A stretch of DNA of 64,000 nucleotides from Rebecca billardiae RCC1528 (lineage: Eukaryota; Protista; Haptophyta), in NCBI GenBank assembly GCA_965240325.2, contig OZ251246.1, forward strand, positions 930,001-994,000. The letters are read 5' to 3'. Positions 6,836-36,126 of the stretch are shown here, piece by piece. Position 1 is the stretch's first letter, and every line of letters starts with the position of its first letter. The notes below the pieces were generated by a model. The model had not been told where the DNA came from. It made no database searches and saw nothing but the letters and a program-made list of their open reading frames with translations. The position numbers and the translations under genes are program-made.

Positions 6836-6879
6836 TATATATATATATTAATTAAAGACATATATATATATATATATAT
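6836..6879. repeat. (AT)n microsatellite tract
   Basis: Two AT runs separated by a few bases. Confidence 0.8.
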
Positions 6880-7159
6880 GAATAAACGGCACTCGCAGCT
6901 GTTCGCTCGTCGTCACGTAGATCGACACGAGTACAGTACGTAGTCAACGTCAGTCACTACCGCCAGACGACACCAGCATATCATCAGCCGATCGATATAC
7001 TACCGGCCGCCCTGACGTGAGTGACGATACGCATCGGGCGGGCTATGCCTAGTAACATGCGCGTCGTAGCAGCTAGCAGTATAGACGATAGAAATCGTCA
7101 TTGTCCCGGGGGCGTTGGGCTCGGCAGCAGCGCAGCGCACTGCTGCGCCATCACACTGC

Positions 7160-8255: not shown

Positions 8256-9239
8256 TCAGCACGTGCCTGCTGCCTGATGGGCTTCTTCGCACCACGCGCG
8301 GCAGTGCGGCTTGTGCGCCTTCCACGCTTGCCGCAGGTGGTCGTGTGAGCAGAAGACCGCGACGCGGCACCTGTCGCACTTCTTCAGACCACGGCCCGTC
8401 TTGGCACACACCATGCAACACTTGGACACCACGTTGCGATCCGCCGCAAACTTCAAAAGCTTAGTGCTCAGGTCGCTGACGGCGGAGGTGTCACACTCGT
8501 GGGCTTGGCGCAGTAGCCGCGCGCCCTCCTCCACGTCGCGCTGCGCTCCCTCGCCAGCGAGCAGCAGCATCCCAAGGCTGCCGAGACAGACGCTGCGATG
8601 AGCATTAGTAAGGTAATCTGGCATGATGCCACAGATGTCACCATATACGGCGAGCCGGTGCCAGCGCACCGCCTCGGCAGAGTCCTGCGGTACGCCATCG
8701 CCCGACAAGTAGCACCTGCCCAAATAGTGCTGAGCATCTGCGCAGCCCTGCTCGGCCGCCAGCCGATACCAGCGCACCGCCTCGGCCATGTCCTGTGGCA
8801 CGCCCTTGCCATCGCGGTAAGCCAGGCCCAGCGTGAACTGCGAATCTGTATTGCCCTGCTCGGCCGCCAGCCGGTACCAGCGCACCGCCTCGGCAGAGTC
8901 CTGTGGCACGCCCTGGCCAAGTTGGTAGCACGAGCCCAGAATAGACTGCGCATCTGCGTGGCCCTGCTCGGCCGCCAGCCGGTACCAACGCACGGCCTCC
9001 GCAGCGTCTTGAGCCAGCCCGAACAGGCCGCGGTGATGAAGGGCACCGAGCTTGTACTGCGCGTCCGCCAGCCCGCACTTGGCAGCGACGCGATACAGAT
9101 GAATCGCCTCGCGCGCGTCCGCTGCGACGCCGTCTCCGGAGGCGAGGCGATCGGCCAGAAGCAGCGCGGCGCGCCCGTCGCCTCGTGCTGATTTGCGCCG
9201 AAGCAGACCCAGCGCGGCGGCGCGAGAGCGCTCCTCCAT
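8256..9239 (-). CDS. Sel1-like repeat protein with C-terminal MYND zinc finger (intronless, about 327 aa)
   Basis: About 5-6 Sel1 repeats (AQxxLGxxYxxGxGVPQDxAEAVRWYRLAAEQG), then CMVC-x8-CDRC-x4-FCSHDH-x4-W-x2-HKPHC. ATG taken at MEERSR. Confidence 0.88.
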   Translation of the reverse strand: MEERSRAAALGLLRRKSARGDGRAALLLADRLASGDGVAADAREAIHLYRVAAKCGLADAQYKLGALHHRGLFGLAQDAAEAVRWYRLAAEQGHADAQSILGSCYQLGQGVPQDSAEAVRWYRLAAEQGNTDSQFTLGLAYRDGKGVPQDMAEAVRWYRLAAEQGCADAQHYLGRCYLSGDGVPQDSAEAVRWHRLAVYGDICGIMPDYLTNAHRSVCLGSLGMLLLAGEGAQRDVEEGARLLRQAHECDTSAVSDLSTKLLKFAADRNVVSKCCMVCAKTGRGLKKCDRCRVAVFCSHDHLRQAWKAHKPHCRAWCEEAHQAAGTC

Positions 9240-9343
9240 CCGCGCCGCCCGTGGGCGAGTGCGAGGCGGTGGGAGGCGGCGACCAGTAGGTAGCCAAGCC
9301 AGACGACCGGTGCACGACTGGCCAAGCCGAGACCGGACTTGAC

Positions 9344-10456
9344 CAAGGGGAGTCAGGGTACAGCACGTCCAGTTGGGCTGCAGCTGGAGCTTGGGTCCAA
9401 AAGCTTCCCGCGGCGCAGCGGCACTCGCCGCCGCCGCCGCCGTCGAGGGGCGGTTGTGGCGCGCACGGCGTGAGCCGCTGCGGGCGCTGAGGTGCGCGCG
9501 ACGGCGGCGCGCCCGGCGGCGCTGCTGTAGGAGGCCTCTGCCCTCCTCTCTGCCCCGCGCGCTTCGCTCGTCGTCGCCGTCTCCGCGCCTGCGACTCAGC
9601 GCGCACGCGAGCGCCGCACCGCCCGGCCGCCGGGGCAATCTCAGCCGTGACTGCGCATGTGCGTCGCGACCTGGTCGGCCCAGCGCGCGAGGCGCGTGTG
9701 GGCGAGGTAGGGCCAGTATGGGCGCGCGCCATGCCGCCTCTAGTAACCATCAGAGCGTACATCAGGAGACTGAGCACGCGTGTCTGGTTGGCCGCTTGGA
9801 CTGTGTTCAAGCAATGCACGGGCCATCGTCGAGGCGATTTCGAGGCACTCAGTCAAAACGCCAGTTCCGCGCGCAGACGACCTGGACGAGAGCCACTGAC
9901 GATGTATGTTTCGAACGATCACAAAAGGCTCTGCAACTATGGCGTCTGTACGCCTACTGCCTCGATCGTGCACACTGACGTCTGCGCTTGGGTGCCGCAT
10001 GTTTGTCAACGTTGTCGACAGAGGTGCAAGGCCCGCGACATGCCCACCGGCGCAAGGTCGAGGCGGCATGGCGCGCGCCCATACTGGCCCTACCTCGCCC
10101 ACACGCGCCTCGCGCGCTGGGCCGACCAGGTCGCGACGCACATGCGCAGTCACGGCTGAGATTGCCCCGGCGGCCGGGCGGTGCCGCGCTCGCGTGCGCG
10201 CTGAGTCGCAGGCGCGGAGACGGCGACGACGAGCGAAGCGCGCGGGGCAGAGAGGAGGGCAGTGGCCTCCTACAGCAGCGCCGCCGGGCGCGCCGCCGTC
10301 GCGCGCACCTCAGCGCCCGCAGCGGCTCACGCCGTGCGCGCCACAACCGCCCCTCGACGGCGGCGGCGGCGGCGAGTGCCGCTGCGCCGCGGGAAGCTTT
10401 TGGACCCAAGCTCCAGCTGCAGCCCAACTGGACGTGCTGTACCCTGACTCCCCTTG
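9344..10456. mobile_element. Non-autonomous foldback DNA transposon (P/Galileo-like): ~397-bp TIRs (9344-9740 and 10060-10456), 319-bp spacer, 7-bp TSD ACTTGAC
   Basis: The arms are reverse complements with only a couple of mismatches seen. Termini are CAAGGGGAG...CTCCCCTTG. ACTTGAC lies at 9337-9343 and 10457-10463. Confidence 0.88.
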
Positions 10457-10823
10457 ACTTGACCGGACTCGGCCAACGGCCGTCCGGCTCAGGAACCGCA
10501 GGGATCTTCGACTGTGGCGTAGTAGTTCACTACCGCATGCGAATACAGATGCCGCTGCACTGGGTCGGACCAGGCTACGAGTACAGCAGTAGCATATGTC
10601 GCATCACAGTGTGGGTGGGCCCGGCTCCGCCAGGTGCGCCAGGTGCCCAGCACTCCTGCCCCGGAGCGCGGCTGATCAGACCGGGACGTGGCGAGCCCGA
10701 GGCGGCGAGCTGATTGTGTGCCGTCCGCTCGTCGAGCCCGTCGATCGATCGCGCTGCGGCGTGCGCGGACGCCCCCGTCGGACGCCCCGGCGCGCGCGGC
10801 GCAGCAGGTCGCGGCGGCGGCCG

Positions 10824-34155: not shown

Positions 34156-34211
34156 GCTCGCCCGATCCTGAGGGTTTGCTCCCCAAGCCGGCAGGCAACT
34201 TGGAGCTGTGG

Positions 34212-36008
34212 CAAGGGCGGTACAGGTCGATGAGGGCAGAATGAGACAGAGGGCACTTTGAGACAAAGGTGGCGGCCCAGTGGCGGTCCACTGGCGCCCA
34301 CTGGGCGTGGTACATGGCGCCCGCCTCGCACGCGCTACAGCGCCCGGTGAGGTGGACGCAAGTCTGTCGAGACGCGTCACATGTGTGCCCAAGGTGCATG
34401 CCTGGCACCTCCGCTCGTTTGCAGGCCGCTCCGCTGCCCATGCCTGGCCTGCACGCACCAAACGTAGCCGCCGAACGTGCCCCGCCACTGTGAGACGGCC
34501 GCGAACCGCGATGCACGGTGCCCTTCAGTGACGTGAGCAAGGTAGTCTACTACTGCAAGGGAACGCCAACCTGACGGCTGGCCATGCCATGGGAGGTAGT
34601 AGGGACGTCAGACACGCGCCAAGAGCCCATGGGAAGCTTGCTCTCCCCATTTGGTGAGCTCGTCGGGCGTGCGCACGCGGTTTGTCTCAAAGTGCCCTCA
34701 CCCCCCCAAAGTGAGACAAACTTGATGGTGCTCGTGCTCCTCAACGGCATGGAGTTAGCCCACGAGACTCGCAGCTTGAACTCTTCGTCTGATGCCCTCC
34801 ACGACGACGTGCGCGAAGGGCGTGAGCGCCATCGTGCTGGAGCGCAAAACACGATCCGGGATTTTGTCTCATTCTGCCCTCACCCACCTGTAAGGGCTGT
34901 CAACTCCCAGTGGCGGCAGCGCCAGAGGTTGGCTCCCGCTTCGCTGCTGCGCGGCCTCGCTCCAGCGACTAACTCTCGTGGGCGCCCGCCCCGGGGGGCG
35001 AGTGGGGCGCGCACGGCGCGAGCTCCTGCGGCCGTGTACGCGCGCGCGGAGGCGGCGCGCGCGGCTGGGCAGGTGCTAGGGAGTGCATGTCGCCCTCCCA
35101 CGCCGCGCGCCTTGCTCGCCGCCGCTTTCGCCGCGCCTCAGGCCAGCGCGCACGCGTGCGCCGCCTCCAGAGCCAGCCTCGGGCCCGCGGCAGCCGGCCG
35201 CGCGCGTGTGGTGCGCGGTCTGGTCGGCGCGAGTCGGTCGGGGCCATCGGGCGAGGTTCGCATACTATAGACGCGCGCTCTGCCGCCGCGCGCCGCCGCG
35301 CACGGTTGTCATGGGTCGACACGCAAGCATCTTAGGTCTGACACGAACTGCAGCACGAATGCGAAAATGCTCATGTTTGGACGCTCATGGAGACGTTGAA
35401 GAGCACAACAGACGAGCGCAGGCGATGGAGAGCGGGGCAATGCACTCATTGGACGCCGTACACGCACCCGATGCGGCCGCCTATCACGCGCATGGGCGCT
35501 CACTGTCGCGTGTTCGAGCTCATTTCTGCTTGTCGTACATTCATCGATCAGCTTCCTTCAACAGCTTCACGGGATGGTACAGGTCCCATGCGCGGCGGCG
35601 CGCGGCGGCAGAGCGCGCGTCTATAGTATGCGAACCTCGCCCGATGGCCCCGACCGACTCGCGCCGACCAGACCGCGCACCACACGCGCGCGGCCGGCTG
35701 CCGCGGGCCCGAGGCTGGCTCTGGAGGCGGCGCACGCGTGCGCGCTGGCCTGAGGCGCGGCGAAAGCGGCGGCGAGCAAGGCGCGCGGCGTGGGAGGGCG
35801 ACATGCACTCCCTAGCACCTGCCCAGCCGCGCGCGCCGCCTCCGCGCGCGCGTACACGGCCGCAGGAGCTCGCGCCGTGCGCGCCCCACTCGCCCCCCGG
35901 GGCGGGCGCCCACGAGAGTTAGTCGCTGGAGCGAGGCCGCGCAGCAGCGAAGCGGGAGCCAACCTCTGGCGCTGCCGCCACTGGGAGTTGACAGCCCTTA
36001 CCGCCTTG
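34212..36008. mobile_element. Second foldback (P/Galileo-like) element: ~420-bp TIRs (34212-34220 plus 34891-35302; 35589-36008), 286-bp spacer, 7-bp TSD GCTGTGG; left TIR interrupted by a mariner MITE
   Basis: 34891-35302 is the reverse complement of 35589-36000. Termini are CAAGGGCGG...CCGCCTTG. GCTGTGG lies at 34205-34211 and 36009-36015. Confidence 0.87.
34223..34890. mobile_element. Non-autonomous Tc1/mariner-type element (668 bp) with TA TSD
   Basis: TA|CAGGTCGATGAGGGCAGAATGAGACA ... TGTCTCATTCTGCCCTCACCCACCTG|TA. Extra internal copies of the GAGGGCA-x4-GAGACA motif at 34249-34267 and, inverted, at 34681-34699. Confidence 0.85.
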
Positions 36009-36126
36009 GCTGTGGGGCCGGACCAGCGGTGGTCCGGATTTGAGATGATTCGAAGTCTCGCGCCCGCCCGCCGCTCGGGAGCCGCTCGGCCGCGCGAAGC
36101 TGACGATCGCCATCTCGAGCGGCAAG

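Follow-up and report, generated by a model that had tools for sequence, protein, structure and literature searches.

The window, which is the whole stretch of DNA analysed here (64,000 nucleotides), corresponds to positions 930001-994000 of contig 30 in an assembly of 72 Mb (41 contigs, ~70% GC), and the searches described below covered that assembly. The first of two foldback elements in the window, designated E1, occupies positions 9344-10456 and has the termini CAAGGGG...CCCCTTG. Its left arm, a long terminal inverted repeat that begins CAAGGGGAG, extends over 9344-9740 on the plus strand, and the right arm, which ends CTCCCCTTG, over 10060-10456 on the minus strand. The repeat search indicated that the two arms, each of 397 nt, are 99% complementary. 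Between them, the sequence and the repeat search delimit a non-coding spacer (loop) of 319 nt with lower GC at 9741-10059. The heptamer ACTTGAC, read directly as the left target-site duplication at 9337-9343, recurs as the right target-site duplication at 10457-10463. The arms, the lower-GC spacer and the flanking ACTTGAC on which a first-pass annotation had based its description of a foldback transposon are all present.

E1 is located upstream of a minus-strand Sel1-repeat/MYND gene, at ~100 bp from its conserved coding part. This adjoining gene (8256-9336) belongs to a large Sel1-repeat/MYND-finger family with 108-bp repeat units, which has ~300 further matches in the genome, many of them clustered on contig 5. 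A search with the left flank of E1 for an allele lacking the insertion matched only paralogous Sel1-repeat genes.

The second element, E2, extends over 34212-36008 and lies between two divergent genes, one encoding a Ctr copper transporter and the other a Rieske-domain protein. It has arms of ~420 nt, carries CCTTG at its right end (36008) and is flanked by the target-site duplication GCTGTGG, read directly at 34205-34211 and 36009-36015. The left arm is broken after its 11th base, where a nested insertion (34223-34890) severs the terminal stub CAAGGGCGGTA (34212-34222, plus strand) from the remainder of the arm (34891-35305, plus strand). In the repeat search, 34890-35305 paired with 35586-36001 over 416 nt at 100%, which places the spacer (280 nt) at 35306-35585. 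The right arm (35586-36008, minus strand) ends in CAAGGCGGTAAG as read on the reverse strand, and so lacks one G of the family form. At other places in the genome, intact E2 copies have a length of 1128 bp and 424-nt arms, and their left terminus reads CAAGGGCGGTAAGGGCTG; in the comparison of right ends, other E2 copies match the E2 query from position 4. The start at 34212, the terminal sequences, the ~420-bp arms and the clean 7-bp duplication given for this element in the first-pass annotation were all recovered, and the spacer length of 286 bp is corrected to 280 nt.

The nested insertion is a MITE-like element of 668 bp with inverted ends of ~26 nt (CAGGT..GAGGGCAGAATGAGACA), and a related motif, GTCTCAAAGTGCCCTC, recurs inside it. 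Its insertion site within the E2 arm is a TA, which is present at both 34221-34222 and 34891-34892; immediately after the second TA, the arm continues. The TA on both sides points to a Tc1/mariner-like target, and the nested element is no part of the foldback family. Both E1 and E2 are inserted on the promoter side of genes, a sample of two that proves nothing alone. A preference of P elements in flies for promoter-side sites is cited in one study (10.1101/158386).

The genome-wide distribution of E1 was determined with a 29-nt sequence from its end. It occurs 95 times (49 forward and 46 reverse), exactly or nearly exactly, and the reversed control sequence gave 0 occurrences. Nearly all of these ends are paired at a distance of 1.11-1.13 kb, corresponding to ~48 E1 copies. 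The E1 spacer was found at ~50 places with 90-100% identity, all of them inside E1 copies; the genome search detected no spacer outside E1 copies, and thus gave no lead to a master element. With the E2 arm, a first look at the genome yielded 709 candidates, 40 of which were scored and were 94-100% identical, and further matches were found at 73%. E2 is represented by dozens of near-identical copies plus diverged relatives.

An exact 7-bp duplication, whose sequence differs from site to site, flanks 50 of the 56 copies fetched (36 of 39 for E1 and 14 of 17 for E2), and a flank match of 8-10 bp was seen in none of the 56. The flanks of different copies part exactly at CAAGG or CCTTG in both families. 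The target sites (n = 50) show a weak palindromic preference, G-Y-Y-N-R-R-C. Tabulating the arms genome-wide, as had been proposed from the window alone, therefore gave multi-copy families with CAAGG ends and 7-bp duplications, and neither single-copy elements nor 9-bp duplications.

The mean identity between the two arms of one copy is 99.2% for E1 and 99.05% for E2. Between copies, the identity is 98.35% (E1) and 96.65% (E2) for the arms, and 96.6% (E1) and 97.8% (E2) for the spacers. The insertions of both families are very young. The near-identical arms had been attributed either to recent activity or to arm homogenisation; the identities favour recent activity, and homogenisation is not needed, because the within-copy excess is small. 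The E1 and E2 arms had also been described as different in sequence, which does not hold: they align over their whole length and have many invariant blocks of 9-19 nt in common. In particular, the GC-rich sequence GCGCGCACG occurs twice in the arms of E1 and of E2, with a spacing of 139-140 nt in both. The copy counts, the 7-bp duplications, the arm identities and the lack of coding capacity bear out the earlier proposal of two sub-families that are non-autonomous and recently active.

No coding copy was found among the E1 ends, and the two longer pairs are ordinary copies with nested elements. These pairs, L031 (contig 13, 1050817-1053433) and L032 (contig 14, 453822-455824), have their ends 2.6 and 2.0 kb apart, respectively, and their foreign insertions (~1.5 kb and ~0.9 kb) are located at nearly the same place, 46-57 nt inside the arm.

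Several copies lie close to one another. At four loci (L049, L055, L022, and L076), an E1 or E2 copy is separated by exactly 7 bp from another CAAGGG/CCCTTG end, a gap that suggests shared targets and double insertions. Neighbouring ends spaced by 7 bp have been described as the signature of double insertion for P elements (10.1101/158386). On contig 5, two E1 copies are 24 bp apart (L042, 3098854-3101108). On contig 14, two E1 copies with unmatched flanks (L048, 2339300-2340418, and L049, 2397174-2398292) are separated by 58 kb. In one of them, the left flank is GTTTGCG, whose reverse complement, CGCAAAC, forms the left flank of the other and directly abuts an E2 end. A double insertion followed by recombination between the copies, with inversion of the DNA, probably accounts for this pair. 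The remaining two flanks are unpaired, which indicates a more complex history.

A candidate source of the transposase was sought with Pfam profiles. PF21787, which represents the N-terminal RNase-H part of P-type transposases, matched exactly one place in the 72-Mb assembly, an uninterrupted minus-strand frame of 1322 codons on contig 21 (1532845-1536810; L037:1046-5011). A second P-type gene was detected in the assembly neither with PF21787 nor with the contig-21 protein as query. A word-based protein search with the contig-21 protein gave no relatives; an exhaustive search gave 538 relatives at E<=0.001, the closest with ~33% identity, and transcripts of the pelagophyte Aureoumbra and of a diatom are among them. 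A profile built from 30 relatives and compared with solved structures matched only the Drosophila P transposase (6P5A, E 5.9e-41), and the match spans the N-terminal RNase-H part, the GTP-binding insertion and the C-terminal RNase-H part. PF21787 was matched by 24 of these 30 relatives and PF21788 by 19.

The residues D46, D159, and E445 of the catalytic part, which form the DDE triad, are invariant or nearly so among the relatives. The motifs D-x-P-H-x-x-K-x-x-x-N and D-x-x-E-H-x-F-x-x-x-R are kept in the contig-21 protein. An AlphaFold model of this protein (pLDDT 80, pTM 0.80) had 6P5A as its top fold match (E 4.6e-19, TM 0.70), with ~17% identity in the structural alignment, and the next matches were RAG1, Transib, and Hermes (~1e-5, TM ~0.3). 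The third-position GC of the catalytic part, 0.91, indicates a true coding frame in the style of this genome. Judged by its sequence and predicted fold, the contig-21 frame is a real P-type transposase frame. In its N-terminal 779 residues, neither a THAP domain nor any other Pfam domain was detected; this region has a Cys-rich motif, R-x-P-x-C...C-x2-C, that is also present in the relatives L084, P0001, P0005, and P0008.

The surroundings of the contig-21 gene were searched over 19 kb and then over 49 kb for inverted ends, for CA[AG]NG ends with 7-9-bp duplications and for similarity to the E1 or E2 arms, and none of these was found; the matches consisted of GC-rich low-complexity sequence only. 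The search for a P-type transposase frame flanked by CAAGG ends, suggested in the first-pass annotation, thus had a divided outcome: the intact frame exists in the genome, and flanking CAAGG ends are absent within 49 kb. Beside the gene, at 1525111-1531797 of contig 21, a 2229-codon frame encodes a Ty1/copia-type polyprotein with RVT_2 and retroviral SH3-like domains, and is situated in a low-GC island (48-60% GC).

Metagenome contigs were scanned with an alignment of six sequences, which gave eight loci. On one contig of 7054 bp (L084), a homologue that matches the contig-21 enzyme over its full catalytic length with 27% identity (E 5e-41) lies between inverted ends at 209-244 and 6864-6899. 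These ends begin CAAGGGGAG, the first nine bases of E1. The flanks of this element, GTTATTC and CTCTGAG, do not match each other, so that no 7-bp duplication is visible for a coding relative. Two other contigs (L086 and L087) contain a single 4-kb relative inserted at two different sites: their sequences agree at 100% from the base preceding CAAGGGGAG inward, and the sequence outside the element is unrelated. The boundary of identity defines where the mobile unit ends without recourse to a duplication. Both the L084 element and the L086/L087 element encode proteins of the PF21787/PF21788 type, and the inverted ends of these coding elements are short (36-37 nt). The loci L081-L083 and L085 represent a clade of 564-residue proteins, whose genes have introns and a hairpin after the gene and gave no usable ends. 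In this marine clade, the P-type gene is immediately followed by a 290-500-bp hairpin, at 2050-2544 of L082 and at 1285-1572 of L083, which may be either the end of a foldback element or a nested element of that type.

The L084 and L087 elements contain a second gene on the opposite strand, which encodes a protein of ~680 residues with 52% identity between the two. Pfam contained no match to this protein even at E 10, and the Atlas offered no useful neighbour. It has a single homologue in the present genome, a 739-codon frame on contig 3 (E 1.8e-10); in the pairwise comparison, the similarity extends over 220 residues with 28% identity (E 2e-15). The contig-3 frame is carried by an element of 3.2 kb (657786-660986; L089, L090, and L092) with inverted arms of ~455 bp that are 92.5% identical. 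Its termini are CAAAGGAATCAAGGGGGG (CAAAGG), and it is flanked by the exact 7-bp duplication GTAGACT. Derivatives of 1.9 kb on contigs 35, 16, and 5 also have exact 7-bp duplications, so that all four pairs in this family match. Duplication length, end sequence and companion gene together tie the CAA(A/G)GG long-arm elements to P-type transposons.

Long perfect palindromes can come from long-read assembly errors, and the foldback structures might on this ground be assembly artefacts or local inverted duplications. The ~48 E1 and dozens of E2 copies are spread over many contigs with identical ends and their own 7-bp duplications; we excluded an artefact on the basis of this copy number and of the site-specific duplications, and give it practically no chance. 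Several superfamilies have CA...TG ends, and the CAAGG...CCTTG ends would also fit the Y-A-R-N-G pattern of hAT elements, which could make E1 and E2 non-autonomous elements moved by a hAT transposase; there is one match to PF05699 in the genome. However, hAT elements make 8-bp duplications, whereas 50 of the 56 copies have exactly 7 bp. The sole PF05699 match is a weak one (31.5 bits) to a broken 89-codon frame with an internal stop, and CAAGGGGAG ends are found on elements encoding P-type enzymes. We rejected the hAT superfamily, which we regard as very improbable, on the duplication length and the state of the PF05699 match. An origin from Mutator/Foldback-type elements (FB, FARE, or Tm1-like) moved by a MULE transposase seems extremely improbable. 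MULE ends are usually G-rich, but the ends here begin with CA. Although the Mutator group includes the classic foldback elements known from flies, plants and nematodes (PMC3169594), duplications of ~9 bp are typical of that group, as opposed to the 7 bp in all matched copies of E1, E2 and the contig-3 family, and the link provided by the metagenome is to P-type enzymes.

The elements could also be of P-type origin with a mover that is gone from the assembly or is an unrecognised protein, in which case the contig-21 gene would be domesticated or an unrelated P-type gene. In keeping with this explanation, the contig-21 gene is single-copy, without inverted ends and beside a copia retrotransposon, and its third-position GC is host-like. 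However, the arms are 99-100% identical, and with copies so young the source should still be in the genome. The Pfam-family and protein searches offered no other P-type gene as that source, and the catalytic triad of the contig-21 enzyme is intact. We therefore consider a lost or unrecognised mover unlikely, though the least improbable of the alternatives.

Our preferred interpretation, which we hold with good confidence, is that E1 and E2 represent two sub-families, related to each other, of non-autonomous foldback transposons with a "two-arm" structure, that they belong to the P superfamily and that they are probably mobilised in trans by a P-type transposase. The features of that superfamily found here are the 7-bp duplication, the defining inverted arms, ends in common with P-type coding elements and a P-type transposase in the genome. 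The proposal of a P-like system moved in trans, made from the window alone, is strengthened by the 7-bp duplications, the intact P-type frame and the shared CAAGGGGAG ends, with the trans-acting enzyme itself being deduced. As judged against the literature, E1 and E2 would form a new foldback family, the enzyme that mobilises it being predicted from sequence.

A plausible mechanism can be outlined from the P-element literature on binding, pairing and cutting (PMC7776569, PMC3698922, PMC3688188). A P-type transposase (TNP/THAP9-like, with an RNase-H-fold DDE domain) supplied in trans would bind sites in the long arms, pair the two identical ends and cut at the CAAGG termini. The excised DNA would enter a staggered 7-bp cut, whose repair would give the 7-bp duplication. 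The blocks conserved between the E1 and E2 arms, such as the repeated GCGCGCACG (no more than a lead, given its GC-rich sequence), are candidate binding sites, and the protein encoded by the contig-3 second gene may assist transposition.

The contig-21 gene is the most likely source of the enzyme for E1 and E2, at roughly even odds because it has no physical tie to the elements, and it could instead be domesticated or a dead end. A transposase gene is absent from all copies of E1, E2 and the contig-3 element. The link from E1 to the coding relatives consists of the nine shared end bases and one homology of 220 residues (28%), and the carriers are metagenome organisms whose enzyme is 27% identical. 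More tentatively, and with the balance somewhat against it, the three components could constitute a split P-type system, in which an immobile, end-less transposase gene and a companion protein of ~700 residues, which accompanies P-type transposases in relatives and is encoded here on its own long-armed element, jointly drive hundreds of gene-less copies of several sub-families. If true, this would be an immobilised yet active P transposase, a natural counterpart of THAP9-like genes before or without domestication, and P-type transposition would gain a new accessory factor in the companion.

Flies and a few animals are the best-known hosts of P-type transposons, and to our knowledge the foldback P-type form (Galileo) is known only from Drosophilidae. 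Our literature search gave no description of foldback or P-type elements from haptophytes. A young multi-copy family in a haptophyte-type alga widens the range of the P superfamily, and considered together with Galileo it suggests that the long-arm design has arisen at least two times within the superfamily. A candidate enzyme (contig 21) and a candidate accessory protein (contig 3) can now be named. A young cut-and-paste system with promoter-side insertions could become a mutagenesis tool for this group of algae, for which few genetic tools are available. The E1 and E2 copies are also likely to drive inversions, with the contig-14 pair as one probable case.

Like the Drosophila P transposase and human THAP9, the contig-21 protein has an RNase-H fold into which a GTP-binding domain is inserted, as well as the D-D-E positions and both motifs. 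It differs from them in that no THAP domain was detected in its N-terminal 779 residues, which have the Cys-rich C...C-x2-C motif instead, and in that the 1322-codon gene has no inverted ends. The FB, FARE, and Tm1 elements are similar to E1 and E2 in hairpin architecture and in that most copies are gene-less, while they have duplications of ~9 bp and MULE-type enzymes (PMC3169594) in place of the 7 bp and the P-type link observed here. BuT5 of the Drosophila repleta group, a gene-less element of ~1 kb, was assigned to the P superfamily by the similarity of its ends to those of a coding P element (PMC3698922), and the same logic of end similarity ties E1 to L084 and L087. BuT5 has inverted ends of 3 bp, duplications of 8-9 bp and ~100-260 bp in common with its master, as compared with the nine end bases that E1 has in common with coding relatives from other organisms.

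The closest parallel in architecture is Galileo. Galileo and 1360 make 7-bp duplications, whereas those of the P element are 8 bp (PMC3698922). Copies of the "two-TIR" kind are known in Galileo (PMC3573991). Like E1 and E2, it combines long foldback-like arms with a short middle, a 7-bp duplication and many gene-less copies, and in both cases there are several sub-families with related arms as well as chimeric copies whose 7-bp flanks are unmatched (PMC3573991). The enzyme is P-type in both, known for Galileo and presumed for E1 and E2. The present elements differ from Galileo in their host, a very GC-rich haptophyte-type alga, in arms without tandem repeats, and in that the genome has no full-length coding copy with E1 or E2 arms. 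In addition, the metagenome coding relatives have ends of 36-37 nt and a second gene, which Galileo does not have. The likeness to Galileo, as established from its published descriptions, is therefore one of architecture, and a relationship to any fly element at the family level is very unlikely because the transposase and the P transposase share only ~17% identity when aligned by structure.
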